From positions 248,001 through 312,000 of the IMG/VR virus record IMGVR_UViG_3300050120_000152: a stretch of DNA of 64,000 bases. One strand, 5' to 3'. Below the pieces are notes generated by a model. The model did no database searches, had not been told where the DNA came from, and was given only the letters and a program-made list of their open reading frames with translations. The translations under genes were made by a program, and so were the position numbers. Below, piece after piece: positions 1-25,521 of the stretch (its first letter is position 1; each line of letters opens with the position of its first letter).

Positions 1-39
1 CTTGACACGCTTTGCCGGGAAATAATATATCCACACCTA

Positions 40-1743
40 TTAATTCTTATAATGACGATTTTCTCTACGAGTTTTGCCATCGTAGTGATGTTTACGAAAA
101 TGGTTAATAGGTGATGCAAACAAACTACCCACTTTCATCTTTTTATCGAAAATATATTGACATGCCAAACTACTTAATGTTTGTTCAAATATATGTTCAT
201 ACATGTCAGATAAAAATAGTTGATAGTTTCCTTTCTTATTGAATAATAAAGGCCAATTAGAATAATGAAATTCTCCTACCGCATATGATACCCCCTTATA
301 GGCTCCTGTGTAGTATATCTTGGTTTTCCAGCGTAGCTCATCACTTCCTTTATCATCGGGGAAGATTTCATCGCGTCTATGACTGGCAACATTCTTATAG
401 CCCCAATTGAAATGACAATCGCCAAAGACTTCAGTATGATTCAGGCGTAAGAAATCAAGTTCATTGTCTTCTAGTATTTCAATACTCTTTTGGAATAATT
501 CTGGGATATAGCGTACAAATCCATTTTTACATGGTTGACCTTTGAATATTTTACCTGATGAACTTTCAGCATAATCAGCATCATTATCACCATCGTTAAC
601 CAAAAGCATGTCGTCCTCAAAGAAAACCATGTACTTATGTTCAGATTTATCAAAATGCTTGGCACAAAATACTCGGCCATCGTTGATACCAATATTCTCA
701 CCTTCATGAATAACTTCAAACCCATACTCAGTGAATAATTTTGTATATTCTTTCTTTACCTTGGGGTCAGTTGAGTTATTGACCACATATTTTTTATGTT
801 TATCAAATTCTTTTGGATATGCTTTTTTAAAGGCATCGGCCCACATAGTAAACTGTTTCGGTAAATTATAAGTTATGGCATAGAATGCTAATGGATATTC
901 TGGATCGGGAGCCGTTACTTTGTTGGTCTGTAAATTTTCAAAGAACTTATACACTAATCCATTACCTTCAATAAATCGTAGATTATATTTTTTAGGGTCG
1001 CGATAGGTTAATAAAGTGAAAATACTTTCTTCTGTCCCCATGTAACCTGCGTTTAATGTTTCATTCAATAAATGGTAATAATTATCGTTGAATGCATTAA
1101 TGGCATCCTTGTTGCCGCCAAATATACCACCACGACATACATATTCTGTGTTACATCCCGCATATTGATTCATGGCAGCTTTTTTGAACCCATGTACTTC
1201 AACTTGACCATCATAGGGAAAGGCCACGAACATCATTTTATTAAGATGTGGCGTTATAAGTTTCTCAAAATCTTGATTAAAATAGGCATCAAGATTTACC
1301 GTATTTGCTAACCCGCCGTCTACCCACAGAAAGTACTTTGATGAGAATGGATTCGTCAATGATGCGTCATTTAACATAAATTGCTTAGACATTACTAAGG
1401 GATTATACAATTCCAATTTTGCTTGTGTACTACCCGCAAGCCATCCAGCTTGACCTAACCAGTCAGAATTTATCCGTATTTCTTGAGTTTTATTATAAAA
1501 TGGAAATTTGCGTAAATCATCAAGAGTTTTAATAATAACGCTAGTATTATCACGTTTTCTATGTTGCCATACCAACTCTTCATATTGTGGTTCAATATAG
1601 ATAATCATAGGAAAATCTAATTTTAATAATTTAGTAAAACATTCGAGATAATGATCGAAGGGTCGTTTCATATCACTGTCCATTTCCCCACGGCCAATGT
1701 TGAAAAGTCCTGTACAGATGGTTAGGTTTTGTCTTGTATTCAT
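40..1743 (-). CDS. Bifunctional glycosyltransferase: N-terminal WlaTC/HtrL(YibB)-family domain plus C-terminal GT2/GT-A-like domain
   Basis: N-term TICTGLFNIGR, YNPLVMSKQFML, YFLWVDGG, GGIFGG, GTEESIFT are HtrL-type motifs; C-term has NIGINDGR and YMVFFEDDM (GT-A acidic motif). Confidence 0.75.
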   Translation of the reverse strand: MNTRQNLTICTGLFNIGRGEMDSDMKRPFDHYLECFTKLLKLDFPMIIYIEPQYEELVWQHRKRDNTSVIIKTLDDLRKFPFYNKTQEIRINSDWLGQAGWLAGSTQAKLELYNPLVMSKQFMLNDASLTNPFSSKYFLWVDGGLANTVNLDAYFNQDFEKLITPHLNKMMFVAFPYDGQVEVHGFKKAAMNQYAGCNTEYVCRGGIFGGNKDAINAFNDNYYHLLNETLNAGYMGTEESIFTLLTYRDPKKYNLRFIEGNGLVYKFFENLQTNKVTAPDPEYPLAFYAITYNLPKQFTMWADAFKKAYPKEFDKHKKYVVNNSTDPKVKKEYTKLFTEYGFEVIHEGENIGINDGRVFCAKHFDKSEHKYMVFFEDDMLLVNDGDNDADYAESSSGKIFKGQPCKNGFVRYIPELFQKSIEILEDNELDFLRLNHTEVFGDCHFNWGYKNVASHRRDEIFPDDKGSDELRWKTKIYYTGAYKGVSYAVGEFHYSNWPLLFNKKGNYQLFLSDMYEHIFEQTLSSLACQYIFDKKMKVGSLFASPINHFRKHHYDGKTRRENRHYKN

Positions 1744-1792
1744 ATTATGATCTTCTTTGGATTAATTATTTATTTATTATACGTGAATTGCG

Positions 1793-2641
1793 CTACAATA
1801 CATCTTCGAAAAAAGTGCTAAAGGGTTTCATAGTAGATTCAAAGCAATCCCAATCTTCATGATACCACGTATCAAATTCATATATTTCAAATTTGTCAGG
1901 ATACTTTTGATATACTAAGGTAAAAATTAGTTCTTCGGGTAATAAGGTATTTTTTGATAAAATATAATTAACTATGTTATCAAACCCATCTTTTAAGAAA
2001 TTTATTGATGAATATGTTCCACCAAATAAACCGGCAACAATACTTCCGGGCAGGGTTTGCGTCTTTGAGTATAATTCTGGATATGAATGTTGTCTATTCG
2101 AACAATAAAATGTAAATAAATTATTATCACTTAGTTTATCTAGTTTATCAACTAGTTTATGAGTAAATATTAAATCATGTTGATGAGATTGTTCAACAGT
2201 ATCTATTGGATTTGATTTAAATCGTTTTGGTAATATTCCATTATGAGAAATTCCTGCATCAATCCAAAATATTTTATCGTTTGGATATTTTATTGCTTCT
2301 ATTTCCAACCAAAATATTTTTAACCACATTAATTCAACGCAACGATTCGTCCAAATATTATCCAATGCATATATTTCTTTATTAACATGTTTGAGTTGAT
2401 GAATCGCATCATGATATTTCATAGAATTTAATTCAAATACTTCCAAAGATACATTAGTTATGGTATTCTTGAATAAATATTCTTCAATTTCTGCTTTATC
2501 AACGGATGAAGTGTAACATAATATAGGTTCGCCCATTCCCGCTAAACATTTTAATGAAAATAAGTAATGATTATTTCTATTTAATCTTCCGCCATAAGGT
2601 GAATGATGTAATTCATTGTAAATTGCGGTTACAAATTTCAT
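1793..2641 (-). CDS. WlaTC/HtrL-family glycosyltransferase
   Basis: MKFVTAIY, LMWLKIFWL, IFWIDAGI, AGLFGG, PEELIFT; paralogue of the N-terminal domain of 40..1743. Confidence 0.72.
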   Translation of the reverse strand: MKFVTAIYNELHHSPYGGRLNRNNHYLFSLKCLAGMGEPILCYTSSVDKAEIEEYLFKNTITNVSLEVFELNSMKYHDAIHQLKHVNKEIYALDNIWTNRCVELMWLKIFWLEIEAIKYPNDKIFWIDAGISHNGILPKRFKSNPIDTVEQSHQHDLIFTHKLVDKLDKLSDNNLFTFYCSNRQHSYPELYSKTQTLPGSIVAGLFGGTYSSINFLKDGFDNIVNYILSKNTLLPEELIFTLVYQKYPDKFEIYEFDTWYHEDWDCFESTMKPFSTFFEDVL

Positions 2642-4972
2642 TTATGCATCCAAAAATTTATAACGACTGATATTTTCTATGGATGACAGTAATAAATAAT
2701 CATAATCTTTACCGATCTTACCCAAATCCATGTACCATAATAACATACCTTCATAATTGTTGAACATCCATTCAAGATTTTCAAAATTTCCGCAAAATAA
2801 TGCAGTGGTAGGATAATGTTCAATATCAAAATTGAATTTATTTTTGATATATTCTCTATCAAAAATACTGTTCATCTCTTTTTTTGATGTAATGACGATA
2901 CAATCATCGGTTTTTGCAAACTGAGATAATAAATCAACATCACGGGCGATATCATAAGCATATTCACGCTCATTCAATTCATCCAAGTTAACGAATAGAT
3001 GATACTTACTACGGTAATGATTTAATTGAATAACTTCTTTACACCAAAATAGTTTAACATATTTTGAAAATTCTACAGTAGAATTAGATTTAAATTCAAA
3101 ACGCTGTTTTAATCGCTGATCATAATAATGTTGATGTGGCTGAATCAAAAAATATTTAAATGATTTAGATTCAGGGAGTAAACTAACATACTTATGATAA
3201 TTATATTGTGGTATTAATAAGGTAAGGTTTCTATCGTCACGGATCAATTTTTTAATTTGTTCGATATCATAACTTATATCAATATCAGCGGTTTTAAATG
3301 ATAATACATAGATAGAAGTATCAGCTGTTAATTCACCTGCTAATTGATCGTCTTTTATTTTTTTGAATTTATTGCTACCGGGCTTTACTATCAATTTACC
3401 CTCAAAATAAACAGCATCTAATTCCGTATCGCGAAGAATTTTAAATGCGTCAGATAATCGGCTTAATATAGGTTTACCATCTACATTGAACGATGTATTT
3501 AATAGTACCCCATGCCCTGTAAATTTTTCAAGTTCACCTAATAGATCGTAAATCAATGAATTTTGGGCTTTGGTTACGGTTTGTAATCTTGCTGTATTAT
3601 CTTGATGTGTAATGGCAGGTAATCTTTCGCGCCACTCTTCTCTCACAGTAGCCACGAATATCATGTGCCGAGATTCTACACCTTCATCAAATTCAAAATA
3701 CTTAGTAGTATCCTCTAATCTTACCATAGGTGCAAACGGACGATACCATTCACGGTGTTTTACTTTATTATTAAGAATATCTTTCATATCACCTACCGGA
3801 TTACATATGATGCTACGATTACCCAAAGCACGAGAACCGTGTTCAGAGTTACCTTGAATCATACCAACGATATTACCTTCGGCAATAAATTGTGCTAATT
3901 CTTCTAGCTGGATATCTTCATATACTTTTAGATCATGTTCCTGTATATAAGTACCAAACTGGTTCTTATCAATAACAGGCGTGCCACTGTAGGTCAAATC
4001 TACTTGCTGTTCGGGATTCTGATACCATAATAATCCACCGGCTGCTATACCACAGTCATTGACGTTAGGTGGAACGAAAACCTTATTATTACGCAACTTG
4101 AGAAGCTTAGTATTTAATAACACATTGAGCGCACAACCACCAGCCATTGCGATTGGCATATCTGGATATTTGTTTAAATAAGGCTGCGCAAATTTAAAAA
4201 ATTGATTTTCAAATGCTTTCTGCGAAGTAGCTGCAATATCCCAAGCTAGTTGGCCTTCATATCGACTCGATTCCAAATCAAAATCATCAATTCCAATATT
4301 TTTAAATAATTCGGTTAGGGCTTCAAAGCGTACTTCAGCGCCACCTTGCACAGAGTTACCAATATAATTAAATTTTGAATAGAAGTGTTCGAAATGAGGT
4401 ACCCAATGATCACGAATAGTTCCGTAGGAACATAACCCCATAATTTTACCAGCATAGACCAAGTTACCGATGCTTAACGGTTCTTTTTTAATATCCTTAA
4501 GATAATCACATAAAATCATATATGGAAATCCTAAGTCTTGATTGAATTTATCAATCAATCGAATTCCATGTTGACGATTAGCATTATATACGTTGAAGTA
4601 CCCATTATCACCACCGCCGTCGAAAGTGAATATTAATGCTTCTTTATAGGGCGATTGATAAAATGCAGTTGCTGCATGAGCTGTATGATGGTCATAACCC
4701 AATGCTTCCTTGGTATGAAATTTTGGTTTTATGTGTTGAACATAATCTGTCAAATAAACATCCACATCACTTCTATCCGTAGTGGAAAGAAGATATTCCG
4801 TAATTTCATCAAATATTATTTGTGGATGTTTACTTGGCATATAAGTGGTTAAGCCGATATTCTTCGAATTTAACCATCTTTCAACTTCAATTACCCTATA
4901 TTCACCCTTATAATACATTGCTATTGCAGCATTATGTGATCCATAAGCAGATATTATCAATTTATCTTTCAT
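2642..4972 (-). CDS. NodU/CmcH-family O-carbamoyltransferase fused to a C-terminal degenerate HtrL-like domain
   Basis: HHTAHAATAF, DGGGD, AGGCALNV, PPNVNDCG (Kae1-like domain); GSRALGNRSI, KHREWYRPFAP, LLNTSFN (YrdC-like domain); about 230 aa C-terminal extension. Confidence 0.9.
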   Translation of the reverse strand: MKDKLIISAYGSHNAAIAMYYKGEYRVIEVERWLNSKNIGLTTYMPSKHPQIIFDEITEYLLSTTDRSDVDVYLTDYVQHIKPKFHTKEALGYDHHTAHAATAFYQSPYKEALIFTFDGGGDNGYFNVYNANRQHGIRLIDKFNQDLGFPYMILCDYLKDIKKEPLSIGNLVYAGKIMGLCSYGTIRDHWVPHFEHFYSKFNYIGNSVQGGAEVRFEALTELFKNIGIDDFDLESSRYEGQLAWDIAATSQKAFENQFFKFAQPYLNKYPDMPIAMAGGCALNVLLNTKLLKLRNNKVFVPPNVNDCGIAAGGLLWYQNPEQQVDLTYSGTPVIDKNQFGTYIQEHDLKVYEDIQLEELAQFIAEGNIVGMIQGNSEHGSRALGNRSIICNPVGDMKDILNNKVKHREWYRPFAPMVRLEDTTKYFEFDEGVESRHMIFVATVREEWRERLPAITHQDNTARLQTVTKAQNSLIYDLLGELEKFTGHGVLLNTSFNVDGKPILSRLSDAFKILRDTELDAVYFEGKLIVKPGSNKFKKIKDDQLAGELTADTSIYVLSFKTADIDISYDIEQIKKLIRDDRNLTLLIPQYNYHKYVSLLPESKSFKYFLIQPHQHYYDQRLKQRFEFKSNSTVEFSKYVKLFWCKEVIQLNHYRSKYHLFVNLDELNEREYAYDIARDVDLLSQFAKTDDCIVITSKKEMNSIFDREYIKNKFNFDIEHYPTTALFCGNFENLEWMFNNYEGMLLWYMDLGKIGKDYDYLLLSSIENISRYKFLDA

Positions 4973-4994
4973 TTATATATCTTATTATCTTCTA

Positions 4995-5002
4995 TATTTA
5001 TA
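4995..5002 (-). promoter_or_regulatory. T4-type late promoter TATAAATA upstream of the carbamoyltransferase/HtrL operon
   Basis: Exact T4 late consensus about 22 nt upstream of the ATG at 4972, same spacing as at structural genes. Confidence 0.65.
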
Positions 5003-5039
5003 TGCGCTTGTCGTAGATAATTCCATACAATATATCTAT

Positions 5040-5507
5040 TTAAGTCCATAAATATGATCTATAAGTGATGATATTATTTAAATGTGTAGTATCAATTTTC
5101 TTATATTCTTCTAGTAATACAAATGATAAATCATAATCATTTATAGCATGAGCTTCTTCATATTTAATATCACGAATCTTAGCCCAATTATAGGCATCGT
5201 TCATCGTATCAAAGATAAGCTTATTGCGTTCACGGGATAGGTCTTCAGTAGTCACATTATGATCATAATCTGAAGTATTATCATACATTTCATATAGATA
5301 TTTAAGTGATGTTTTTCCATCATCATTTTCCCAAAAATTAATCAAACACGCAAATGTAAGTGTTTCTATGAGCGTATCAATATCTTGAAAATGTTTTGGT
5401 ATTTTTAATGTTAACCATTTTTGTCGAGGATTTACTCTAGTTACTACAATATCGTACCATTGGCGGTTCCACCAATATGAGTTAAATAATAATTTAATAT
5501 TTTTCAT
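5040..5507 (-). CDS. Hypothetical protein
   Basis: 155 aa ORF co-oriented with neighbours; no recognised motif. Confidence 0.6.
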   Translation of the reverse strand: MKNIKLLFNSYWWNRQWYDIVVTRVNPRQKWLTLKIPKHFQDIDTLIETLTFACLINFWENDDGKTSLKYLYEMYDNTSDYDHNVTTEDLSRERNKLIFDTMNDAYNWAKIRDIKYEEAHAINDYDLSFVLLEEYKKIDTTHLNNIITYRSYLWT

Positions 5508-5611
5508 AAGTTATCCATTCTCTATAAATCAATTTTAAATCCTGTTTAGCTACAGAAACGCCACGCTACCAAATCAGCTGTTGAATATATTTCTTTATGT
5601 CGTGGTATTCC

Positions 5612-5641
5612 AAAATAAAAAGGTCAGATATAACTCTGACC
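5612..5641 (-). terminator. Intrinsic terminator after the GT60 gene
   Basis: Minus strand GGTCAGA-GTTATA-TCTGACC followed by TTTTTATTTT. Confidence 0.55.
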
Positions 5642-5673
5642 AGTTTATCATATCAAATCTAATATATCAATTA

Positions 5674-7059
5674 TTAATTTTCAACTATTTTATCAATCTT
5701 CTTCAACCAATCCTTCGATGCGCTGTGTGGCCATACGGTATATGTCTTAGCAATGCGGTCGGGGGGTGACATGTAAATGAAGCGATAGTCGATCCATTCA
5801 CCTTTCAGATATTCCTTAATTTCTGATGCAGATAAATCTTTTCGATATATTTCAGAGCCATACTCATCATGGCACCCGACATAGCAGAAATCATAATCAT
5901 CTATAATCATGACATTACCTTGATCGTCTAAGGTATTAAGATCATTCTTATGAATGCAAACTCTAATATCGTTTGATCGGGAAATAGTGGATTTCCACTC
6001 TTCAGCAGAATCATAAGTCTTATATCCTGTTAACGTTGGTTCAGTACGATCTAAAACGCATTGCTGAACACCGCGATATTTAAATGCTACACCAGAAAAT
6101 TCTTCATAATCCTTTACTGTTCGTACAGTACCAAACCCATATTTACCAAAATCTATCTGAGATTGATCTTCACCATCCATACCAAATAAAATACGATTGC
6201 GCTTATGAGAATTAACATTCTTTTCCCACCAATCTTCAGATATTTTACCTTTCTGTTTTTGTTGGGTTGTATGGTCATCCCACACTTTTACGCGGCCTGC
6301 CCGTGTATATTCATGCCAACATACTACAATATTGGGATGATATAAATCATATCCATGAGTATAAGCTCTTACGCCGATGGATACTTCTTCACCATGGAAG
6401 AAAAATTGTGGGTCATGCTGAACTTCTTCGGCAAATATTCCATCAGCGAATGCAAAATGTGCTGAATAAAATCTTGCATGTATAGGTTTTGTGCGAGTTT
6501 TCCAATCATCTATTGTTGATGGTCTTGTAAAATGGGTGCCTTCGGGAATAAATCTATCAAAATCCATTTTCCACGGTTCCTGAATACGAGCAGCTGGATC
6601 ATTCTGTGGATCAAAAGAAGATACATAAGCCGTCAATAGAGGTTTCGGGCTTACATCTCTTACAGATTCTAGCATGTCAATCAATACAGTATCCCAGCCC
6701 TGTATGAATCTATGATGTGAATCTAATTGTAGGGTATATTTTTCTTTCTTATAATGCTGTTGTATTTTGTTTCTAGCCCAGCATGCCCCATTCGTTTTTA
6801 AATAATGCAAGTCGATTAATTCAATTGTTGCGCCGTTTAAGGTAAGTACGTGTACGTCATCATCTAAAACGGTTTCAGAATTTACTACATCAAATTTTTT
6901 ATCAAGAAAATCTTCAATAGTTTCATCTGCGCCATGTTGCCAGCAAACTACTGCGCGAATTAACTCAGGGTGGTTAGCATTATTGATTAGATCAGTTAAA
7001 GTTGGGATTAACTGGGGATCTCTATAACTAGCGATTTGTACGAAAATTGTGTTATCCAT
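5674..7059 (-). CDS. GT60-family (Skp1-hydroxyproline / polypeptide) alpha-N-acetylglucosaminyltransferase-like protein
   Basis: TIFVQIASYRDPQL, GACWAR, YTLQLDSHHRF (DSH motif), FFFHGEE, RAYTHGYDLYHP, YGFGTVRT. Confidence 0.85.
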   Translation of the reverse strand: MDNTIFVQIASYRDPQLIPTLTDLINNANHPELIRAVVCWQHGADETIEDFLDKKFDVVNSETVLDDDVHVLTLNGATIELIDLHYLKTNGACWARNKIQQHYKKEKYTLQLDSHHRFIQGWDTVLIDMLESVRDVSPKPLLTAYVSSFDPQNDPAARIQEPWKMDFDRFIPEGTHFTRPSTIDDWKTRTKPIHARFYSAHFAFADGIFAEEVQHDPQFFFHGEEVSIGVRAYTHGYDLYHPNIVVCWHEYTRAGRVKVWDDHTTQQKQKGKISEDWWEKNVNSHKRNRILFGMDGEDQSQIDFGKYGFGTVRTVKDYEEFSGVAFKYRGVQQCVLDRTEPTLTGYKTYDSAEEWKSTISRSNDIRVCIHKNDLNTLDDQGNVMIIDDYDFCYVGCHDEYGSEIYRKDLSASEIKEYLKGEWIDYRFIYMSPPDRIAKTYTVWPHSASKDWLKKIDKIVEN

Positions 7060-7088
7060 TTTTATCCTCTATTTTTAATGGGCATAGT

Positions 7089-7124
7089 AAAATAAGAGTG
7101 TCAGATATCTGACACTCTTATTTT
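7089..7124. repeat. Perfect 36-bp palindrome (terminator/operator candidate)
   Basis: AAAATAAGAGTGTCAGATATCTGACACTCTTATTTT equals its own reverse complement. Confidence 0.85.
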
Positions 7125-7134
7125 GTGGGTTGCA

Positions 7135-7593
7135 TTACGATTTATTAGATTTTGGTGGGCGACCAGCTTTACGAGGGGCTGGGGCTGAAGCCTCTGTAGC
7201 ACCATACGGTGGCTGAGCTGCCTGTTGAGACACTGGTTGTCTCATTGGCTGAGCATCTGGATTAAGTCGGGTACGCTGCACTGAACCAGTACGATATAAG
7301 TTAGGTGCCATAATTTCACCAGAGCGAGTTTTTACTTTTACGAACTGGTGGAAATATTCTAATGCATTCACACCATTAGCAAGTGTAATCTGAGCGAATA
7401 AATCCCATGCCTCATAACGAGCAGCGTCACGGCGTGATAAAATCATACCAGCACGATTACGATCAATATCATCAAGATAGTCGGTACGGATAAAGAAAAC
7501 GTCACCGTTTACTTTGTTGTGTTTCAACACAATGACTTCATAGTCGATGCCATTGTTAAAAAGGTCTATAAGTGTTACATGTGGTAATGCCAT
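7135..7593 (-). CDS. Hypothetical phage protein, probably late-expressed
   Basis: 152 aa ORF with AGGAG SD; CATAAATA box at 7625-7632 (-). Confidence 0.7.
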   Translation of the reverse strand: MALPHVTLIDLFNNGIDYEVIVLKHNKVNGDVFFIRTDYLDDIDRNRAGMILSRRDAARYEAWDLFAQITLANGVNALEYFHQFVKVKTRSGEIMAPNLYRTGSVQRTRLNPDAQPMRQPVSQQAAQPPYGATEASAPAPRKAGRPPKSNKS

Positions 7594-7649
7594 ACGACTA
7601 TCTCCTAATTCTTCAAGTCAAAATTATTTATGGAGATAAAAAAATCGTG

Positions 7650-8522
7650 TCACGCTGTAAACGTCATTTTTTCCATATGCATGTCAAAATAATATAAGAC
7701 TTCATTAATATTTGATATAACATACAAACCGGGAGTGTCATAATATGATTGAAATTTCCTAGATAATAAATCACCCCAATCAAAATCGGGAGATATATGA
7801 TATAACTTAATGATTTGATTATTAGATTGTTGCAATTTCAATCTAAGATCAGACTCAAATTCATTCATTACCATAAACATATAAATGTTTGATGGCATAT
7901 CGGCATTACGAGCAATAACTAATATATTTAATTTGTTTTTTATGGCGATCAATTGATCGCTAATAGACGATCCAATCCAATCTTTCCATGATACCCAAAA
8001 CCCGCCTCGTTTGGGTTTGCCTGTATAAATGGTTTTACCATACACGAGGTTTGGCCATAATGGAATATTTGTAGGCAATTTATCCTGTCTGCCTAACTCT
8101 ACCCAAGCCTCTCTAGTTTTTAATTTTAATGATCGTGCATAATCTCTAGCATCATGAAATGAGCGATATATCTTTTTTGAATCGGGGAATGTATTATAAG
8201 TTCCAGTCCAATCGCCCCAAGATACCCATCCCTCGTTAACATAGGTTCTGGCGGGATTTTTTGGAATTCTTGCTGGAATATTCATATTCCACCAACGTAT
8301 AAAATCATTATGTGAGCCTAAACATTCACCCCGGACAATTGTTCTGGCTTCTTCGAAGGGTAATACAAATCTTGCTGGCCCACGTTTTTTGTTAGTTTTT
8401 TCTATTTTTACTGGTCTACCACTACGATCTTTGCGATTTCTGACCGTATTTCTAGGTCTACCAAAACCTGTTTTTTTGAGTTTTCGTCTGGGTTTTTTAA
8501 TTTCTGTAATTTTTTCGTTCAT
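7650..8522 (-). CDS. Basic protein with two phage-integrase-repeat-like units (putative nucleic-acid binding)
   Basis: Two units F.EAR...IP..P..Y...GWVSW.DW.G; Lys/Arg-rich N-terminus; no recombinase catalytic domain seen. Confidence 0.6.
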   Translation of the reverse strand: MNEKITEIKKPRRKLKKTGFGRPRNTVRNRKDRSGRPVKIEKTNKKRGPARFVLPFEEARTIVRGECLGSHNDFIRWWNMNIPARIPKNPARTYVNEGWVSWGDWTGTYNTFPDSKKIYRSFHDARDYARSLKLKTREAWVELGRQDKLPTNIPLWPNLVYGKTIYTGKPKRGGFWVSWKDWIGSSISDQLIAIKNKLNILVIARNADMPSNIYMFMVMNEFESDLRLKLQQSNNQIIKLYHISPDFDWGDLLSRKFQSYYDTPGLYVISNINEVLYYFDMHMEKMTFTA

Positions 8523-8562
8523 TGTTAATCTTCAAATAAATAATGTATAATATCAAGAATAT

Positions 8563-9078
8563 ATGGATCGCTTATCTAAATTTAGACAATACTCATTGGC
8601 ATTGGCCGAAACCGTCGATGCATGGCGAATCATTCCACGCTTAATGATTGTAGCTTACGGTGCGCTTGTGGTGAATCTTTATTCATGGTACAAGTCGATC
8701 CCGACCTTCATGCAGCAAAAATGTGATGCCGCCGTGCTACAGATATTTATAACAGGCGGAATGGCATTGCACGATGCTCAAGCGTTGGCATGCACCGTAA
8801 TCGACGTTGTAGGTGGCCCTACACCTGCACAATCTACTTTCGTTACAACCATCATAGGTTTATCAACTGGTATATTTGGATTGTATACTGCTACAGGTAA
8901 AAAATGGGAACAATTAGATTTTAATTATCATCAATTTAGCCAATTTGGCCCTCCCAATAATGGCAATTATAATGGCTATGATATTGATTCGGCGAAGCAG
9001 GGTGAAGTTGCTATGGGACAACCTGCAACACCGATTACCCCATCTAATACTCCATCTATTACCCAACCAGTGAGTTAG
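8563..9078 (+). CDS. Two-TM membrane protein, holin candidate
   Basis: DAWRIIPRLMIVAYGALVV and TFVTTIIGLSTGIFGLY hydrophobic segments; AATAAATA box at about 8535. Confidence 0.45.
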   Translation: MDRLSKFRQYSLALAETVDAWRIIPRLMIVAYGALVVNLYSWYKSIPTFMQQKCDAAVLQIFITGGMALHDAQALACTVIDVVGGPTPAQSTFVTTIIGLSTGIFGLYTATGKKWEQLDFNYHQFSQFGPPNNGNYNGYDIDSAKQGEVAMGQPATPITPSNTPSITQPVS

Positions 9079-10006
9079 TATTTAACATTTTTGTAAATGC
9101 CTTACCATTGGCAGAAATTCGTTCTAACTGATGCTTACCACAGAATTTTATAAATTGAATTAAATTAAATTTACCACGCGTTTCCATGGCTTTCTTAATG
9201 CAATTAATCATGATGGTTTTTATTTCTGTGGGTTGATTTCTTAATCCCATCAATAATAAATTCTCTTCAAATAATTCCTTAGTTTTATAATGATGTACCT
9301 TTAAATTGCCGTCATCGTCATATACTTCTACATCAAATTCGTGAGCCATAATATTAGTTAACTGAAAATTATCGCCAGCATAGGCTTCATCAATAGCTTT
9401 CTTACGTAGTCTAGGATAACTTGATTGTACATTATCCCCAATATCTCCACGTAAACATTTTTCAAACATGAAATGTTCATAATCGAAATTCCATTCTAAT
9501 AATGTTCGTTCTTTTTCTTTATCAGGTTCTATCAACTTTACATTAGGGTGATTCAGTAATTGCATAAAATCTTTATCGGAACTTATGATGACATGATTAT
9601 CATACGGATAGGCATCAACGAAACCCGCTACAAGATCATCACACTCAAGTAAGTTGTGTTTCAATACTATTAATGATGTATGATCCCGTAAATATTCATA
9701 AAATTCATTGATATGACTGTCAAATACTTCTAACTGTTCTTGTTCTTTTTTAGTAAGATTTTGTCTGCGTTGACCTTTATATTTTTTATGGCTAATCGAA
9801 GCATATTTGGTATATTCTTTTCTCCAAGAGTGGGAGTCGAAGATTGCCACAATTTCATCCGGTTGATATTTTTTATTTAAATATTGTAATGATGTTAGTG
9901 CCGAATGATGACACATACTGATTAATATGTCATCATGCTCTTTTATGTTGGCATAAAAAGTACGATACAACATATTTGATATATCAATTTCTAAATAAGT
10001 TTTCAT
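9059..10006 (-). CDS. rnh: T4-type RNase H / 5'-3' flap exonuclease
   Basis: DISNMLYR, FDSHSWRK, YKGQR, LECDDLV, SSDKDFMQL, LRGDIGDNV. Confidence 0.9.
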   Translation of the reverse strand: MKTYLEIDISNMLYRTFYANIKEHDDILISMCHHSALTSLQYLNKKYQPDEIVAIFDSHSWRKEYTKYASISHKKYKGQRRQNLTKKEQEQLEVFDSHINEFYEYLRDHTSLIVLKHNLLECDDLVAGFVDAYPYDNHVIISSDKDFMQLLNHPNVKLIEPDKEKERTLLEWNFDYEHFMFEKCLRGDIGDNVQSSYPRLRKKAIDEAYAGDNFQLTNIMAHEFDVEVYDDDGNLKVHHYKTKELFEENLLLMGLRNQPTEIKTIMINCIKKAMETRGKFNLIQFIKFCGKHQLERISANGKAFTKMLNTNSLVG

Positions 10007-10284
10007 TCGTTATCCGGTTCTTTACCCATATTCTCTTTAATCATATTACGCACATGTGCTTTTTCAAAAATAGTGAACAAATAACTTTCTATCACTTGTT
10101 CATCTGCTATACCTTTATATCCCTTATCACGTAGTCCCATAATGAATGCATTATTCCAGTCCATTTCGACTTCAATACCTTCAGCATCATCCTTTAATAT
10201 TTTCATATCAAAGAATGGTACTGGTGAAGCCTGTATTTTTTGTGTCTTTTTGTATTTAAAAAACTCTTTAATTGTCTTAAACAT
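10003..10284 (-). CDS. Hypothetical protein in replication operon
   Basis: 93 aa, 4-nt ATGA overlap with rnh start; EMDWN motif. Confidence 0.6.
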   Translation of the reverse strand: MFKTIKEFFKYKKTQKIQASPVPFFDMKILKDDAEGIEVEMDWNNAFIMGLRDKGYKGIADEQVIESYLFTIFEKAHVRNMIKENMGKEPDNE

Positions 10285-10296
10285 AGAAATCCTTGA

Positions 10297-11037
10297 TTAA
10301 TGTTCTGCTATTACATATATATTAAAGGAATTTACGTTCACTCTCAACGCACCCCTATCTGAAATTTGCACAGTTAACTTACCGTCTAAATCAGATGCTG
10401 CCTTAAATAGAGGTAAAATATACTTAATTTCATATTCATGGAAGAAATTTTGTTTGGGTGAATTGGGTAAAATTTCAAATGATTCTGAAACAATATGGTC
10501 AAATAGATCACCTTCTACGTCAGTAGTTTTGAAAACTACATTACCATTTTTTTCATTAGAAAATGATATTTTTGATGTGTTAATAGCTGCAAATGTTTTT
10601 TGCATGATTCGTAATGTATCATCAGAAATAATAAATTCATGACAAAATGGGTCAACAAATTTCTTAGGAGCCTTAATACGTAATGAGTCAAAACATGAAA
10701 ACTCAATTTTAGTTTTTTTATTAGCCATTTGTAGTTTTTTTACCATAACATCCCCATTATCTTTTTCTTTACCATCGAATGACATGGTAATGGGATCGGG
10801 CTCCAGAATGGCAATTCGTGTTCCCAAGGTCTTTACTCTTCCTATACCCAAGGAATCAAATTCTAGATTATCTGGAACATTATCCGTTTCAAGAATGAAT
10901 GTTCCTTTAGAATTATCCATAGCTTGTCCTCGTACAATACCCTTTTCTAAAGCTATTGTATCAATACCGCATAATGAACAGGTTTTAATCAATTTTTGTA
11001 TATATTTTAAAGTTGGTTCGCTTAGCTTTTCCATCAT
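10297..11037 (-). CDS. DNA polymerase sliding clamp (gp45-like)
   Basis: 246 aa clamp-sized two-domain alpha/beta pattern, C-term VQISDRGAL; directly downstream of the polymerase. Confidence 0.65.
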   Translation of the reverse strand: MMEKLSEPTLKYIQKLIKTCSLCGIDTIALEKGIVRGQAMDNSKGTFILETDNVPDNLEFDSLGIGRVKTLGTRIAILEPDPITMSFDGKEKDNGDVMVKKLQMANKKTKIEFSCFDSLRIKAPKKFVDPFCHEFIISDDTLRIMQKTFAAINTSKISFSNEKNGNVVFKTTDVEGDLFDHIVSESFEILPNSPKQNFFHEYEIKYILPLFKAASDLDGKLTVQISDRGALRVNVNSFNIYVIAEH

Positions 11038-11061
11038 TATTCTCGTTAGTTTAGTAGTATA

Positions 11062-13809
11062 TCAGTATTCGAACATTTCGTCTATCAATATGGTTTTGTG
11101 AGTTGGTGCATACTCATCAATAGCATCCAAAATGGATTGTAATGGTTTATCAACCAATCTATCTAATTGGCCTTTACGATCTACTAGTGGTGAAAAATGC
11201 TTTGTGAACCATTCCGGTGGAACCTTTGTATCAGTTGGCAATGCAATACTTTTGAATCTATCAAATTTCTTAGTTAAATAGTATGTTTTAATTTTCATAC
11301 CTGAAACAATTTTTGGAGATTCTTTATCATCATAAATTTCCAAACATTTATTATAAAACATTGCAGCAGCCACATGACCCGGCAATTTAACTTTAGGGCC
11401 ACCCGGAATTTGCTTATTAAATTGATTGGTATAATCTTCAATATTCTTGATTCCTTTAGGTAAACCAATAGAAGTAATCTTATCCTCAATTAGGATATCC
11501 TTATATGCGACAACTCGTTTTGCAATATCCTTCCATGGATTACCCTCTAGTAATTCTTCTACGAACCTAGTTAGCTTTTTGCTAATAGGTTTTGGTATGG
11601 TGGTTTTTTTGATTTGAAGCCCCATGACTTTCATTTTCGGTTTGTCTAACTTAACACCTTCATTATATAAAAGATGCATAACATAATATTTCTTTTTGAT
11701 GAAAATTGAATTATCAGCTATAACGTCCAATTCACCCTTAAGAATAGTATCGAACGTATCATTACACATTAGATATTCGCGAGAAAATGAAACAAGTTCT
11801 TCATTGACTATTGATGCAATAATTTTTGCAGCTTCATAAACCTCATCAATGTCGTCACCTAAATTAACATTATCCAATGAAAAGTAGGTAGAGTCGGTGT
11901 CATTGTAAATGATATTATCATCAGGGAATGTATAATCATCATTGAGATTTTGGGCCGATTGCCATACATGAACATTCTTTCTAGCAATAACGTTAGCTAT
12001 TATCATATTCATGAACATTAAAGCTTCTCTACCTGTTCTGGTAGTTGATTCGGCAATTCGTAAATCAAAAAATCTAAAATAAATGTTACCGATAGCTCCA
12101 TATGCAGAGTTTAATAAGATTTTTTTAATAAACTGTAAACGGTGATAATAATCATATTTTATCTTATATTCATCATATAATTTAACATCATTTTCTGCCA
12201 TCAATATACCTTCTCTGATCATCGGACTATTTTTGTCATATGATGGTGGATTAGGCTTATCTTTATATGAAAGAGTAATGTCTTTCATGAGATTTTTATG
12301 TTTCTTGGCTAAATTCTTATATTCTACGCGCTCTTCGTACCATTCTCGTAGAATATCAGAAATAATACCATTTTTGTTCTGATCAAATACTGTACCATTC
12401 GCGCTTAATGAACACTTTCTTGATTTTAATATATCTTTCCATTCATTGGCTAAATGCGTTTCAGATTCACCATCTTCTTTTATTAAAGTCAATGATTTAC
12501 TAGATTGCATGGTGATTTCTTCGTATGCCACGAAGTTATTATAAAATTGGCCTATGATGGTATCAGGACTGGCATTCAATGCTCTGATAATTGAAGGATA
12601 TAGAGATGAGAAGTCGATTGCTGCTACTTTCTTTTTCATACCCACTTTTGGATATGTAACTAATGCACCAGCAAACTTACCATTATCGGAAGAGTAATCA
12701 CGTTCCTTTGCATCAGGAACAATAAGATTTAGTGTATGGTGACATTTGTTATTAATAGTAGCTTCTACTACTCGGATAGTACCCAATACGTCATTCATTA
12801 ATACCGTGGCTGAATGGTACGTTGCAATAGCAACGCCCATATATCCAAGAACATCTTCAAAACCCTTCAATACCTCAGTATCTCTTACGTTGTATCTGCA
12901 AAATTTAGGGAAATCCTCATAATACAAATCGTACAATGATCCATCATATTCCAATTTGGTCATATGTGGTAAAATTTCTTCGGAAATGGCATCAAGAGTG
13001 AAGGATGGTCTAGTGGTAGTTTCAAATTTCTTGAACATCTCAAGATAGTCGATATGGACACGTCCAAAAATATCGACCTGTAAAGTTTTGCTGCCTTTGA
13101 AAATTTCCACTTCTTTGAGTTTAGGAACTGGAGCATTATGAAATGATAAACGATTAGCCATAGCCTCGCCATAGCGTTCAAGCATTCTCATATAAAGATA
13201 GGGAACGTCAAAGCCCGAGCTATTCCAACCACTGATGATATCGGAATTTTCTATTTCGTCAAGGAATCTCAACAAGAGTTCCTTTTCACTTTTACATACA
13301 ATAATTTCCGATAGTTCATGTAAATCGGCTGGTATGTCTTTCTTAGTCCATTTACCATTATCTGGTAGAATAACTAATAATATCATCTTGTCTAGATGGT
13401 GATGATATATTGATATTGCACTTACTGGTGCATAAGGATTTTCTGGTGAAGAGAAGCCACGATTGGGATCATAATCAACTTCTATGTCGAATAAGGTAAA
13501 ATTTAATTTGCCTGTTGGCTTACCATAATATTGCTCTGATAATACCTTGTAAATAGGATTAATATCTGACTCAAACATTTTAATATTACGATCATGATGA
13601 TCTTTTTTGGCTTCGTAAAACTCATATCCTGTAGAATATTCTAATTTTGATAATGATTTTCCGTTAATATCTTTGTATTTTCCATGCTTATCTTGTACAT
13701 AGAAAAAGTATGGTGCATCGTACATCTTAGTTTCAATTTTATTATTTTCACGTTCCCAAACAAGGACGCTTCTTTTATTTTCTGAAAGTGCTGCCGAAAT
13801 ATATGTCAT
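11062..13809 (-). CDS. Family B DNA polymerase (gp43-like)
   Basis: Exo motifs FDIE, GWNSSGFDVPY, YNVRD; pol motifs DFSSLYPSII, KILLNSAYG, YNDTDS, KKYY. Confidence 0.97.
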   Translation of the reverse strand: MTYISAALSENKRSVLVWERENNKIETKMYDAPYFFYVQDKHGKYKDINGKSLSKLEYSTGYEFYEAKKDHHDRNIKMFESDINPIYKVLSEQYYGKPTGKLNFTLFDIEVDYDPNRGFSSPENPYAPVSAISIYHHHLDKMILLVILPDNGKWTKKDIPADLHELSEIIVCKSEKELLLRFLDEIENSDIISGWNSSGFDVPYLYMRMLERYGEAMANRLSFHNAPVPKLKEVEIFKGSKTLQVDIFGRVHIDYLEMFKKFETTTRPSFTLDAISEEILPHMTKLEYDGSLYDLYYEDFPKFCRYNVRDTEVLKGFEDVLGYMGVAIATYHSATVLMNDVLGTIRVVEATINNKCHHTLNLIVPDAKERDYSSDNGKFAGALVTYPKVGMKKKVAAIDFSSLYPSIIRALNASPDTIIGQFYNNFVAYEEITMQSSKSLTLIKEDGESETHLANEWKDILKSRKCSLSANGTVFDQNKNGIISDILREWYEERVEYKNLAKKHKNLMKDITLSYKDKPNPPSYDKNSPMIREGILMAENDVKLYDEYKIKYDYYHRLQFIKKILLNSAYGAIGNIYFRFFDLRIAESTTRTGREALMFMNMIIANVIARKNVHVWQSAQNLNDDYTFPDDNIIYNDTDSTYFSLDNVNLGDDIDEVYEAAKIIASIVNEELVSFSREYLMCNDTFDTILKGELDVIADNSIFIKKKYYVMHLLYNEGVKLDKPKMKVMGLQIKKTTIPKPISKKLTRFVEELLEGNPWKDIAKRVVAYKDILIEDKITSIGLPKGIKNIEDYTNQFNKQIPGGPKVKLPGHVAAAMFYNKCLEIYDDKESPKIVSGMKIKTYYLTKKFDRFKSIALPTDTKVPPEWFTKHFSPLVDRKGQLDRLVDKPLQSILDAIDEYAPTHKTILIDEMFEY

Positions 13810-13825
13810 TAATTGCCTCTAATAA

Positions 13826-13851
13826 AAAAGCGCAGACTTCTCTGCGCTTTT
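13826..13851. terminator. Hairpin with U-tract in the polymerase leader
   Basis: AAAAGCGCAGA-CTTC-TCTGCGCTTTT, 11-bp stem just upstream of the pol SD (AGAGG). Confidence 0.65.
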
Positions 13852-13880
13852 AGTATGACACATGTTGTTCAGTTAATCAA
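13852..13880 (-). promoter_or_regulatory. Sigma70-type promoter for the polymerase/clamp/rnh operon
   Basis: TTGATT-N17-CATACT with TGn extended -10. Confidence 0.5.
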
Positions 13881-13883
13881 GAT

Positions 13884-14201
13884 TCAGTCTTCATCAGATA
13901 CCGAAGTAGTGGTATCGTTATTATTTGATACCATTATAGCTTCATAAGTATCTTCAATGGCAGTATGCTCTGCACTAACATCTTCAAAATTATGATCTGA
14001 AACGATTTTAGCAATCTTTGGAATGATTTTCTTCGGAATACCATAATCACTGTTGAGGGCAGTTACGAAACCTTTTAATACTTCGCGAGCATCTTTAATT
14101 TCTTGCTGTACGCCAGACATTTCATAAAAAATATCTCTAATTTTCTTCTTTTCTTTTGGATCAGATGGAAGGGTAAATCCTAAATCGACGGGCTTTAACA
14201 T
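13884..14201 (-). CDS. T4 DsbA-like dsDNA-binding protein
   Basis: 105 aa helical; EMSG..QEIKD.RE..K, DYGIPKKII.KIAK, IEDTYE pattern. Confidence 0.65.
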   Translation of the reverse strand: MLKPVDLGFTLPSDPKEKKKIRDIFYEMSGVQQEIKDAREVLKGFVTALNSDYGIPKKIIPKIAKIVSDHNFEDVSAEHTAIEDTYEAIMVSNNNDTTTSVSDED

Positions 14202-16938: not shown

Positions 16939-17347
16939 TATTTTTAGCCAATTGTATGATTTCACCATCATTACAGGATATAGCTAATTTAAATTCTATA
17001 TTTTTGGTACCATCTTCAAAATTTATGGGAAGGGTTACGTGTGCTTCATTATCCATTTCACATAAATTGGTCATAATTTCTTTACCTAATAGTGATATTT
17101 TACCAGAACCACAAGCATTTTTCAAACTTTCATATGAGTCCACATATAAAACGTTATCAGAGCCATAGACCACATTAATAATAGGAGATTCGCTTAAACA
17201 ATCAATAGTAACTTTAGTTGATACTGTAACAGGCTCATCTTCTATTGCTTCCACAATAGAAGATTTAAATTCAACCTCAGAATGTGCTAAATCTATATTC
17301 TCGGTAATAATATATTTTAATAATTTTTCTAAATTTTCAAATTTCAT
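16928..17347 (-). CDS. Hypothetical protein, possible head-packaged
   Basis: Translationally coupled to 17347..18909; N-term ends KYIITE. Confidence 0.55.
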   Translation of the reverse strand: MKFENLEKLLKYIITENIDLAHSEVEFKSSIVEAIEDEPVTVSTKVTIDCLSESPIINVVYGSDNVLYVDSYESLKNACGSGKISLLGKEIMTNLCEMDNEAHVTLPINFEDGTKNIEFKLAISCNDGEIIQLAKNNEL

Positions 17348-25497: not shown

Positions 25498-25521
25498 GTT
25501 CTATTTTCGGTTTAAATATAT

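Follow-up and report, generated by a model that had tools for sequence, protein, structure and literature searches.

Several systems have been described in which low-complexity repeats or virion proteins are decorated with glycans. Protist enzymes of the GT60 family (Dictyostelium, Trypanosoma cruzi) are polypeptide alpha-GlcNAc transferases that prime mucin-type O-glycans on Thr-rich mucin-like repeats (PMC8724618), and the family also includes the cytoplasmic Skp1 hydroxyproline GlcNAc transferase Gnt1. In Gram-positive bacteria, serine-rich-repeat adhesins are primed with O-GlcNAc in the cytoplasm by GtfA/GtfB, modified by variable extension enzymes encoded beside the substrate gene and exported by SecA2/Y2. 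Among viruses, the mycobacteriophages Che8, Corndog and Myrna are reported to glycosylate virion proteins on terminal extensions with phage-encoded transferases located near the structural genes (Freeman et al., 2023), and chlorovirus PBCV-1 uses a virus-encoded, cytoplasmic, multi-domain GT-A machinery to build atypical N-linked glycans on its capsid. NodU and TobZ carbamoylate sugar hydroxyls, and a related phage enzyme forms 5-carbamoyloxymethylcytosine (PMC8670742). The closest relatives of the locus analyzed here are ORF330-ORF334 of Xanthomonas phage XacN1, gp300-304 of Xoo-sp13 and the corresponding genes of the Stenotrophomonas phages CM1 and RAS14. XacN1 virions show at least two Schiff-stained bands, which were not assigned to individual proteins, and its authors already suggested that ORF328/ORF334 glycosylate virion proteins. 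Among ORF330-ORF334, however, only ORF334 was called a glycosyltransferase, whereas ORF333 was left as a carbamoyl transferase and ORF330-332 as hypothetical, and no link to Thr-Pro tracts, no pathway and no wider distribution was proposed.

We analyzed a 64,000-nucleotide stretch (the window) of IMG/VR record IMGVR_UViG_3300050120_000152 (positions 248,001 to 312,000), which is part of a 340-kb T4-like jumbo myovirus related to XacN1. A sequence-only reading had proposed that positions 40-7059 encode a GT60 enzyme, three HtrL-type domains, a GT2-like domain and a NodU/CmcH carbamoyltransferase with an exact late box, and that four probable virion proteins of the window carry Thr-Pro-rich tracts. 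Here, we found that each of these sequence features is present. All four cluster proteins are encoded on the minus strand and none of them has a membrane segment.

To define the cluster enzymes, we compared their sequences and predicted structures with known families. ORF 5674-7059 (461 aa), the proposed priming enzyme, matches Pfam PF11397 over the whole model (1e-76, 259 bits against a cut-off of 21; residues 4-326) and phrog_24687 (1.5e-167), and a D113-S-H115 motif is invariant in 12 homologues. The D-x-H motif and the full catalytic domain are shared with the protist enzymes, and like Gnt1 the phage enzyme is soluble. In contrast to the protist enzymes, it belongs to a bacterial and viral set of the family, it carries a conserved extra C-terminal domain of about 135 residues (327-461), and its partners are HtrL-type domains and a carbamoyltransferase, not Golgi enzymes. 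ORF 2642-4972 (776 aa) contains a NodU/CmcH/TobZ-type O-carbamoyltransferase core (3386-4972, residues 1-529) that matches Carbam_trans_N and Carbam_trans_C (1e-24 and 1e-57), phrog_1601 (1e-123) and, among solved structures, TobZ, NovN and GdmN. Its last ~250 residues (2645-3385) gave only a weak profile match to the family of ORF 1793-2641 (hhalign 57%, E 1e-4), but the AF2 model is a confident GT-A fold (pLDDT 86) with GT6/GT8 hits in Foldseek at a TM of about 0.5, and we consider this region a divergent third HtrL-type domain. ORF 1793-2641 (282 aa) is a stand-alone HtrL-type GT-A protein, which aligns over 235 columns to the HtrL domain of ORF 40-1743 (hhalign 98.4%, E 7e-15; BLASTP 4e-7). 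ORF 40-1743 (567 aa) is a two-domain enzyme. Its HtrL_YibB domain (961-1743, residues 1-261) matches PF09612 over residues 6-261 (3e-17) and TIGR02192 (5e-21). The C-terminal half (43-915), which had been called GT2-like, did not match any Pfam GT2 model but is a second GT-A domain (AF2 pLDDT 84) with a conserved E-D-D motif (E376 and D378 invariant, D377 in at least 90%). The best PDB matches of this domain are two-domain transferases (LH3, LARGE1, K4CP, COLGALT1, heparosan synthase 2).

To explore when the cluster may be expressed, we searched for T4-type late promoters. The box TATAAATA is located at 4995-5002 (-), 22 nt upstream of the carbamoyltransferase start codon, and a near-match (AATAAATA) precedes ORF 40-1743. 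The octamer is depleted overall (10 found, 20.8 expected), and 6 of the 10 copies lie 20-37 nt upstream of gene starts in the sense orientation, including those of portal and baseplate wedge. A gp55-type late sigma factor, which would read these boxes, is encoded at 54705-55220 (-) and shares 54% identity with the sigma factor for late transcription annotated in Xoo-sp13. However, the sequence-only reading needs a correction at this point, since GT60 itself has no late box and lies between two hairpins. A perfect palindromic hairpin followed by a T-run is located just upstream (7089-7118, -) and probably terminates the preceding gene; it was read directly from the sequence because its loop is shorter than 3 and therefore escaped the hairpin scan. 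A terminator-like hairpin with T-run follows downstream (5622-5641, -). Between GT60 and the late box there is a 155-aa ORF (5040-5507, -) without any family match in our profile searches. A homologue was found only in one other locus (L007), where it is located at another position, and thus this ORF is not a conserved part of the cluster.

Thr-Pro tracts occur in exactly four ORFs of the window, all on the minus strand. ORF 14908-16971, a 687-aa protein with DUF285 (BspA-like) repeats, carries a tract at 16591-16725 (residues 83-127). ORF 23341-25497 carries a 259-residue tract at 24364-25140 (residues 120-378). The 3499-aa giant protein (ORF 25522-36021) is the orthologue of Xoo-sp13 gp296 and shows weak similarity to gp355 of PA5oct, a virion protein verified by MS. 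It involves an internal tract at 26416-26763 (residues 3087-3202) and a terminal one at 25528-25740 (residues 3428-3498), which joins nothing and is therefore a tail and not a linker, and would be comparable to the glycosylated terminal extensions of the mycobacteriophage proteins. ORF 41882-44323, a baseplate-module protein with a lysozyme-like insert, carries a tract at 43562-43702 (residues 208-254).

To find out whether the cluster is conserved, we compared it with cultured and metagenomic relatives. The order GT60, carbamoyltransferase, 285-aa HtrL-type protein and two-domain HtrL/GT-A protein is syntenic in XacN1, Xoo-sp13 and metagenomic jumbo contigs, and the orthologues of the cultured phages share 50-61% identity. 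Of 80 IMG/VR loci with this carbamoyltransferase subfamily, 76 also carry GT60 and 73 carry HtrL. Conversely, only 6 of 38 long GT60 loci carry the carbamoyltransferase, while 34 carry HtrL. Thus, the carbamoyltransferase depends on the GT60 context, and in the jumbo clade it is fused to a GT-A domain.

We next tested whether Thr-Pro tracts are associated with GT60. Thr-Pro-rich ORFs make up 4.6% of the ORFs of at least 150 aa in GT60 loci but only 0.12% in 111 random IMG/VR loci of similar GC (odds ratio 39, p 2e-11). The tract residues per 100 kb amount to 819 and 1331 compared with 51, which corresponds to a 16-26 times higher density, although the random control is not restricted to structural modules and the GT60 loci are not phylogenetically independent. 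When GT60 proteins were clustered at 70% identity, 26 of 56 clusters included a locus with such an ORF, and about half of the GT60 loci showed no Thr-Pro ORF within the sequence fetched. In 15 metagenome loci, a Thr-Pro-rich ORF on the same strand ends 37-170 bp upstream of GT60. In the one locus checked in this respect (L098), these ORFs match virion-structural PHROGs, and GT60 is followed by GT2, GT10, GT7C-like and HtrL genes. Outside phages, two bacterial chromosome-scale contigs (a Jiulongibacter isolate and an Arcticibacterium MAG) and a 28-kb Verrucomicrobia MAG contig have the module next to a Thr-Pro-repeat protein with a probable Tat signal, and the type VI secretion loci L008 and L305 have Thr-Pro repeats at the probable VgrG end. 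However, short Thr-Pro linkers are also present in relatives lacking GT60. PA5oct has 50 and GAP32 has 23 tract residues per 43 kb, and the value of PA5oct overlaps with the modest tracts of the GT60-positive phages Xoo-sp13 (72) and CM1 (46). The window carries about 6-10 times more Thr-Pro tract than its cultured GT60-positive relatives.

Taken together, these data suggest that the cluster is a cytoplasmic O-glycosylation pathway for virion proteins, and we estimate the probability of this reading at about 0.6. In this view, the soluble GT60 enzyme would transfer a first sugar, most likely alpha-GlcNAc from host UDP-GlcNAc, onto Thr residues in the Thr-Pro tracts of tail and baseplate proteins while they are made late in infection. 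The HtrL-type and GT-A domains (four in three proteins) would extend this sugar, and the O-carbamoyltransferase, which is physically fused to one of these domains, would carbamoylate a sugar hydroxyl using host carbamoyl phosphate and ATP. The result would be glycan-covered, extended Thr-Pro stalks and tails on the virion. Our analysis established the identities of the genes and domains, the solubility of the proteins, the late promoter, the synteny in cultured relatives, the linkage of GT60, HtrL and the carbamoyltransferase and the enrichment and adjacency of Thr-Pro tracts, and the presence of Schiff-positive virion proteins was taken from the paper on XacN1. In contrast, the donor sugar, the acceptor residue, the carbamoylation of the glycan and its position, the order of the steps and the biological role are inferred, and no glycopeptide, sugar or modified site has been observed for any of these phages. 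The interpretation of the sequence-only reading, GlcNAc priming of Thr followed by extension and carbamoyl capping, is thus partly supported: protein glycosylation gained independent comparative support, the chemistry remains inferential, and the suggested roles (stiffening, shielding, adhesion) are speculation.

Such a mucin-like system has not been described for phages. Compared with the mycobacteriophages, which use different transferase families for capsid and tail-tube targets in siphoviruses of Actinobacteria and are not known to involve carbamoylation, the present cluster combines GT60 with a carbamoyltransferase. PBCV-1 infects eukaryotes and has no GT60 primer, although similar GT-A folds are common in giant viruses. 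The primer of the adhesin system has a GT-B fold, whereas GT60 is a GT-A enzyme and the bacterial neighbors of our module carry Tat-like signals. Unlike NodU, TobZ and NovN, the carbamoyltransferase of the window is fused to a GT-A domain and bound to GT60 contexts.

Alternative explanations appear less likely but should be considered. The enzymes may glycosylate virion proteins at other sites, such as capsid or sheath surface residues, and the tracts would then be ordinary flexible linkers that are simply common in the structural modules where the genes sit. The linkers of GT60-negative phages, the GT60 loci without a tract in the fetched flanks and the unassigned XacN1 bands are consistent with this possibility, which we consider unlikely but the strongest of the alternatives. 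It is opposed by the tract density, by the 15 loci with a Thr-Pro ORF directly before GT60, by the terminal 71-residue tract of the giant protein and by the bacterial and type VI neighbors, which are Thr-Pro-repeat proteins outside any phage structural module. Remodeling of a host envelope glycan (LPS core, O-antigen, capsule or exopolysaccharide), for example to block superinfection as proposed for glycosyltransferase clusters of jumbo cyanophages (Iyer et al., PMC7824862), is somewhat less likely. HtrL/YibB is named after an E. coli gene that lies beside the LPS core cluster, two-domain GT-A enzymes shaped like ORF 40-1743 (K4CP, heparosan synthase, LARGE1) are often polysaccharide polymerases, and the variable downstream transferases recall O-antigen clusters. 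However, no lipid-carrier priming transferase, flippase, polymerase or exporter was seen in the cluster or in the loci whose genes were annotated, the enzymes are soluble, the promoter is late, GT60 is a polypeptide-directed family (PMC8724618), and this reading does not explain the Thr-Pro association.

It is also doubtful that GT60 modifies a host protein to take over or disable the cell like a glycosyltransferase toxin, with the type VI copies as delivered cargo. The longer GT60 proteins in L305 and in locus L306, which are 57-60% identical to the phage enzyme, lie directly after DUF2169, DUF3540 and PAAR-like genes, the usual cargo position, and GT60 is transcribed separately from the late operon. 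On the other hand, phage GT60 almost always travels with several extending transferases, which a single-hit modification would not need, XacN1 virions contain glycoproteins, and the Thr-Pro repeats lie on the type VI spike itself. The least likely alternative is hypermodification of phage DNA, in which a 5-hydroxymethyl pyrimidine would be glycosylated and/or carbamoylated to escape restriction. This idea is based on the phage 5hmC carbamoyltransferase (PMC8670742), on the glucosylation of 5hmC by T4-like phages and on the location of the cluster beside the replication genes. However, the DNA of XacN1, which has the same cluster, was cut and mapped with BssHII, NaeI and SpeI, and the thymidylate synthase next to the cluster in locus L024 keeps the Cys-His and Asn of dUMP-specific enzymes. 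No thymidylate-synthase homologue and no sign of the hydroxymethyl-cytosine pathway that accompanies the DNA-modifying carbamoyltransferase was found among the 36 window ORFs scanned, which left out about ten ORFs of at least 100 aa. The bacterial chromosomal copies beside secreted repeat proteins and the fusion of the carbamoyltransferase to a glycosyltransferase domain also argue against DNA as target.

The position of the cluster relative to its putative substrate genes differs between the relatives. In the window, it is separated from the giant-protein gene by the replication module, whereas in Xoo-sp13 only about 2.5 kb (three short genes) lie between them.

The 64-kb window of the 340-kb contig UViG_3300050120_000152 has a GC content of 28-42% and encodes a T4-like core, which involves DNA polymerase, RNase H, helicase and SbcCD, portal and prohead protease, tail tube, tail sheath stabiliser, baseplate wedge, baseplate hub, a gp5-like protein and a giant protein of 3499 amino acids. 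The nearest cultured relatives are the jumbo phages XacN1, Xoo-sp13, CM1 and RAS14, whose DNA polymerases are 42-47% identical, whereas RaK2-like and PA5oct-like phages are more distant. When positions 1-9000 were compared with cultured phages by megablast, no hit was obtained and only protein-level searches were informative.

To explore whether the enzymes proposed by the sequence-only reading are actually encoded in the cluster, we carried out profile searches, profile-profile comparisons and structure predictions. ORF 5674-7059 matches the GT60 profile (Pfam PF11397) at model positions 1-350 of 352 (1e-76, 259 bits against a cut-off of 21), and its D113-S114-H115 motif is invariant in 12 phage and bacterial homologues. 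The role of this D-x-H motif as the GT-A metal site is inferred. Beyond the Pfam model the enzyme carries a C-terminal domain of about 135 residues (residues 327-461, window 5677-6081), which is as conserved as the catalytic domain (W443, S448 and W451 are invariant), matches no family or solved structure and might be a substrate-targeting domain. ORF 2642-4972 is a NodU/CmcH/TobZ-type O-carbamoyltransferase with a Kae1-like N domain (PF02543, 1e-24), a YrdC-like C domain (PF16861, 1e-57) and similarity to TobZ (3e-55). It scored below the NodU equivalog cut-off (170 against 1000 bits) and is, therefore, not NodU itself. About 250 extra residues follow at its C-terminus.

ORF 40-1743 begins with an HtrL_YibB domain (PF09612, 3e-17). 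ORF 1793-2641 gave no Pfam hit, but in hhalign its family aligned to this HtrL domain with a probability of 98.4%. The C-terminal extension of the carbamoyltransferase aligned only weakly (57%, E 1e-4 in one comparison and 3% in another), but its AlphaFold model (pLDDT 86) is a clear predicted GT-A fold, nearest to GT6/GT8 enzymes. Thus, the count of three HtrL-type domains is reasonable, with the third one tentative. The C-terminal half of ORF 40-1743, which had been described as GT2-like, did not match a Pfam GT2 profile, and no Pfam match was found even at E 10. It is a second predicted GT-A domain with a conserved E-D-D motif (E376 and D378 invariant, D377 in at least 90%) and should be named GT-A domain, not GT2. 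As a whole, ORF 40-1743 resembles two-domain transferases such as LH3, LARGE1, chondroitin polymerase K4CP, COLGALT1 and heparosan synthase 2. Searches of Pfam, NCBIfam and the PDB gave nothing for ORF 1793-2641, the C-terminal halves of ORF 40-1743 and of the carbamoyltransferase, ORF 5040-5507 or the C-terminal domain of GT60, so that profile-profile comparison and structure prediction were needed; the alignments rebuilt for structure prediction did not include rows from GenBank-annotated loci. None of the cluster proteins has a membrane segment. Taken together, every item that had been listed from the sequence is present, and the observation is confirmed.

To obtain information on the timing of expression, we searched for late promoter boxes. 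The octamer TATAAATA at 4995-5002 lies 22 nt before the start codon of the carbamoyltransferase. Over the whole window this octamer occurs half as often as chance predicts (10 found, 20.8 expected), and six of the ten copies lie 20-37 nt upstream of genes in the sense orientation, including portal, baseplate wedge and another structural gene. A seventh copy (45608-45615, +) faces the baseplate-hub ORF, but it lies inside the listed GTG start of that ORF. One-mismatch versions precede many other structural genes and ORF 40-1743, and NATAAATA precedes many structural genes. These boxes (e.g., 21648-21655, 39002-39009, 45563-45570, 50504-50511, 58268-58275) constitute a usable late-promoter map for this uncultured clade. 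A gp55-type late sigma factor is encoded at 54705-55220. The carbamoyltransferase, ORF 1793-2641 and ORF 40-1743 are therefore late genes. GT60 is different, since it lies between two hairpins and has no recognisable late box. Sigma-70-type promoters were not enriched in 1-9200 (48 found, 52 expected), so that no promoter of its own was identified for GT60.

We next searched the window for Thr-Pro tracts, defined as 30-residue windows with at least 60% Thr+Pro, and found them in four ORFs and no others. In ORF 14908-16971, a protein with DUF285/BspA-like repeats, the tract involves residues 83-127, and in ORF 23341-25497 (718 amino acids) residues 120-378. The giant protein (ORF 25522-36021) carries two tracts (residues 3087-3202 and 3428-3498), and since the second one runs to the C-terminus it is a tail and not a linker. 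This protein is the orthologue of Xoo-sp13 gp296 (39% identity over residues 3-3082) and the positional equivalent of the giant proteins annotated as virion structural proteins in RaK2 and PA5oct, of which that of PA5oct carries an MS note. The fourth ORF (41882-44323, tract residues 208-254) encodes a baseplate-module protein with a lysozyme-like insert. Compared with its Xoo-sp13 orthologue (gp291), it has an insert (residues about 212-420) that holds both the Thr-Pro tract and a lysozyme/endolysin-like domain, and the tract may have arrived together with a domain insertion.

The cluster is a conserved module. The same gene order occurs in XacN1 (ORF334 to ORF330), in Xoo-sp13 and in several metagenomic contigs of 200-350 kb, with small additions such as a sulfotransferase in the locus L023. 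A scan of IMG/VR with the carbamoyltransferase alignment, which was meant to supply GT60-negative controls, returned 80 loci, of which 76 have GT60 within 10 kb, 73 have an HtrL domain and 70 have the second GT-A domain. The reverse does not hold, since of 38 metagenome GT60 loci of at least 12 kb, 34 have HtrL but only 6 have the carbamoyltransferase. GT60 plus HtrL is therefore the core, and the carbamoyltransferase is an optional addition that needs the core. Together with its fusion to a predicted GT-A domain, this is the best available argument that it acts on the glycan. In a second, uncultured phage lineage (GT60 about 45% identical), GT60 is followed by changing sets of enzymes, including GT2, GT10, GT7C-like, an FkbM methyltransferase, DUF3431 and HtrL, which is the pattern expected for one primer with diversifying extension steps. 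The enzymes around GT60 vary by lineage (a sulfotransferase, an FkbM methyltransferase that is either free or fused to HtrL, DUF3431, and GT2, GT10 and GT7C-like transferases; L023 17731-18369, L026 11569-13911, L040 11300-12495, L098 11247-14527) and this suggests diversifying glycan structures. Only four of 50,697 cultured phage records carry GT60 or the two-domain HtrL/GT-A protein, yet metagenomes hold more than 6700 GT60 homologues, hundreds of them about 60% identical. The module belongs almost entirely to uncultured phages.

Co-occurrence of GT60 with Thr-Pro tracts had been named beforehand as a test of the glycosylation hypothesis. In the GT60-positive viral loci, Thr-Pro-rich ORFs make up 49 of 1074 ORFs of at least 150 amino acids, and 36 of these 76 loci have one. 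Since the carbamoyltransferase scan did not yield a control, 111 random IMG/VR loci (1.05 Mb, median GC 0.36) were drawn with an arbitrary 15-mer. Here, the corresponding figures were 1 of 811 ORFs and 1 of 111 loci (Fisher odds ratio 39, p 2e-11). With a looser measure, 819 and 1331 tract residues per 100 kb were counted in the two GT60 sets, against 51 in the random set. The signal is spread over lineages, since 26 of 56 GT60 clusters at 70% identity include such a locus. However, the GT60 loci are related to one another, the random loci are shorter and are not restricted to structural modules, and about half of the GT60 loci show no tract within the sequence fetched. In 15 metagenome loci, a Thr-Pro-rich ORF on the same strand ends 37-170 bp before GT60. 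In one of them (L098), five such ORFs in a row precede GT60, and two of them match virion-structural PHROGs.

For a more direct comparison we first considered the RsoM2USA region around the DNA polymerase, but it is not syntenic and thus a poor control. Syntenic 43-kb baseplate neighbourhoods were compared instead. Among the GT60-positive phages we counted 460 tract residues per 43 kb in this window, 72 in Xoo-sp13 and 46 in CM1, whereas the GT60-negative phages PA5oct, GAP32, Atu_ph07 and RaK2 have 50, 23, 20 and 0, respectively. Short Thr-Pro linkers therefore exist without GT60. Only the giant protein shows a clean split, with a tract in 3 of 3 GT60-positive and 0 of 4 GT60-negative phages, but this is essentially one clade against the rest.

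The module is also found in bacteria. The chromosome-scale contigs of Jiulongibacter sediminis (a 1.3-Mb contig of an isolate) and of an Arcticibacterium MAG carry GT60, the carbamoyltransferase and a methyltransferase-HtrL-GT-A protein next to sugar-nucleotide genes and a divergently transcribed Thr-Pro-repeat protein with a Tat-like signal in an RR-containing N-terminus and a conserved C-terminal domain (Bacteroidota loci L013 8947-15151, which is identical with L026, and L020 8654-14480). A 28-kb Verrucomicrobia MAG contig (L011 3806-12115) has GT60 and HtrL next to a 234-aa protein that consists of a Tat-type signal followed by nothing but Thr-Pro repeat. Export by Tat would suit a protein that is modified in the cytoplasm, although this is our inference, and these loci may represent a bacterial mucin-like glycoprotein system.

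The closest named cellular homologues (60-64% identical) lie inside type VI secretion clusters, and over all such loci the GT60 homologues are 49-64% identical to the phage enzyme (L008 8538-11359 and 13909-16398; L009 10001-12394; L012 10001-12226; L305 2-1189 and 7417-9723; L306 4882-6987). In Paraherbaspirillum soli (L008), two GT60 copies sit between TssA plus a fimbrial-domain gene and TssL, and the VgrG gene there ends at an assembly gap that is followed by a pure Thr-Pro repeat. In L305, the contig begins inside a Thr-Pro repeat of at least 145 residues, which runs into a beta-helix-like domain just before DUF2169, DUF3540, a PAAR-like gene and a 768-aa GT60 protein. The same PAAR-like then GT60 order was found in L306, and in both L305 and L306 a longer form of GT60 (701-768 aa) follows DUF2169, DUF3540 and PAAR-like genes, the usual cargo position. 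In L008 and L305, the long Thr-Pro repeat lies at the probable VgrG C-terminus and both assemblies break inside it, whereas L012 has no tract. The fimbrial-domain proteins next to the type VI GT60 copies were examined as possible substrates, but they have no Thr-Pro tract. The enzyme could either glycosylate the spike or be a delivered glycosyltransferase, and our data do not discriminate between these possibilities.

Experimental evidence is available for a relative. The XacN1 paper reports at least two Schiff-stained, unidentified bands in purified virions and suggests that the glycosyltransferases of the phage (ORF328, and ORF334, the GT60 orthologue) make them (PMC5852040). When these data are considered together with ours, the proposal of a mucin-type O-glycosylation pathway for the virion is partly supported, and we assign a probability of about 0.6 to Thr-Pro-directed virion O-glycosylation. 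Gene and domain identities, conservation of the module, its linkage to Thr-Pro-rich ORFs and the enrichment of these tracts come directly from our sequence analysis, while the chemistry, including the transfer of alpha-GlcNAc from UDP-GlcNAc to Thr or Hyp of a polypeptide, is inferred from family membership.

Among the alternatives, glycosylation of virion proteins at other sites remains the most serious one, although we consider it unlikely. DNA modification deserved attention, because a phage NodU-type enzyme makes 5-carbamoyloxymethylcytosine from 5hmC (PMC8670742), but that enzyme co-occurs with a dCMP hydroxymethylase, a thymidylate-synthase homologue with Asp at E. coli position 177. The thymidylate synthase beside the cluster in the locus L024 keeps the Asn of dUMP-specific enzymes at this position, and no such hydroxymethylase gene was found among the window ORFs scanned. 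Moreover, the DNA of the relative XacN1 was mapped with BssHII, NaeI and SpeI (PMC5852040), which argues against global cytosine or thymine hypermodification, and the module also sits in bacterial chromosomes. This reading is very unlikely. Remodelling of an envelope polysaccharide (PMC7824862) fits the predicted polymerase-like fold and the HtrL name, but no lipid-carrier priming transferase, flippase, polymerase or exporter was found in the window cluster or in the loci whose genes were annotated, and this reading does not explain solubility, late timing or the Thr-Pro link. It is unlikely. A toxin-like modification of the host is suggested by the type VI copies, but it does not need the extension enzymes that accompany GT60 in phages and appears slightly less likely than envelope remodelling.

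By profile, the putative primer belongs to GT60, the family that starts mucin-type O-glycans in protists (PMC8724618). The system would work like the glycosylation of serine-rich-repeat adhesins in Gram-positive bacteria and like the virion glycosylation of some mycobacteriophages and of chloroviruses, although different enzymes are involved. The idea that XacN1 glycosylates its virions is published, but the pathway, the substrate motif, the carbamoyl step and the wide distribution are not, and literature searches did not reveal any paper that links GT60/PF11397 to phages, bacteria or type VI secretion. Virion glycosylation in phages is documented for only a few mycobacteriophages, and mucin-type priming by GT60 is regarded as a protist trait. 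If this module glycosylates Thr-Pro tracts, thousands of uncultured aquatic and soil phages make glycan-coated tails. This would affect adsorption, protease resistance, particle stability and antibody recognition as well as the way in which structural proteomics and cryo-EM maps of such phages are read. It would also give Thr-Pro linkers in phage and bacterial proteins a defined chemistry and point to glycosylated type VI spikes. A broader scenario, which is possible but tentative, is that GT60 plus HtrL-type transferases form a widespread, previously unrecognised cytoplasmic mucin-type O-glycosylation system of bacteria and their viruses, which targets Thr-Pro repeats on phage tail and baseplate proteins, Tat-exported repeat proteins and type VI secretion spikes. 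In this view, the extensions would be lineage-specific (carbamoyl, methyl, sulfate or fucose-type transferases).

The gene order of the window differs from that of the cultured relatives. In Xoo-sp13 and XacN1 the glycosylation cluster lies about 2.5 kb (three short genes) from the giant-protein gene, whereas in the window the RNase H/DNA polymerase block lies between the cluster and the structural genes (window 1-14000 compared with the locus L108, 20004-42318). A GIY-YIG/HNH-type homing endonuclease gene with its own exact late box (50532-51398) is inserted between the helicase and the SbcD/SbcC genes. A GC-skew spike (+0.31) at 24001-26000 coincides with the long Thr-Pro tracts encoded on the minus strand, and it is a compositional footprint of the repeats and not a replication signal.
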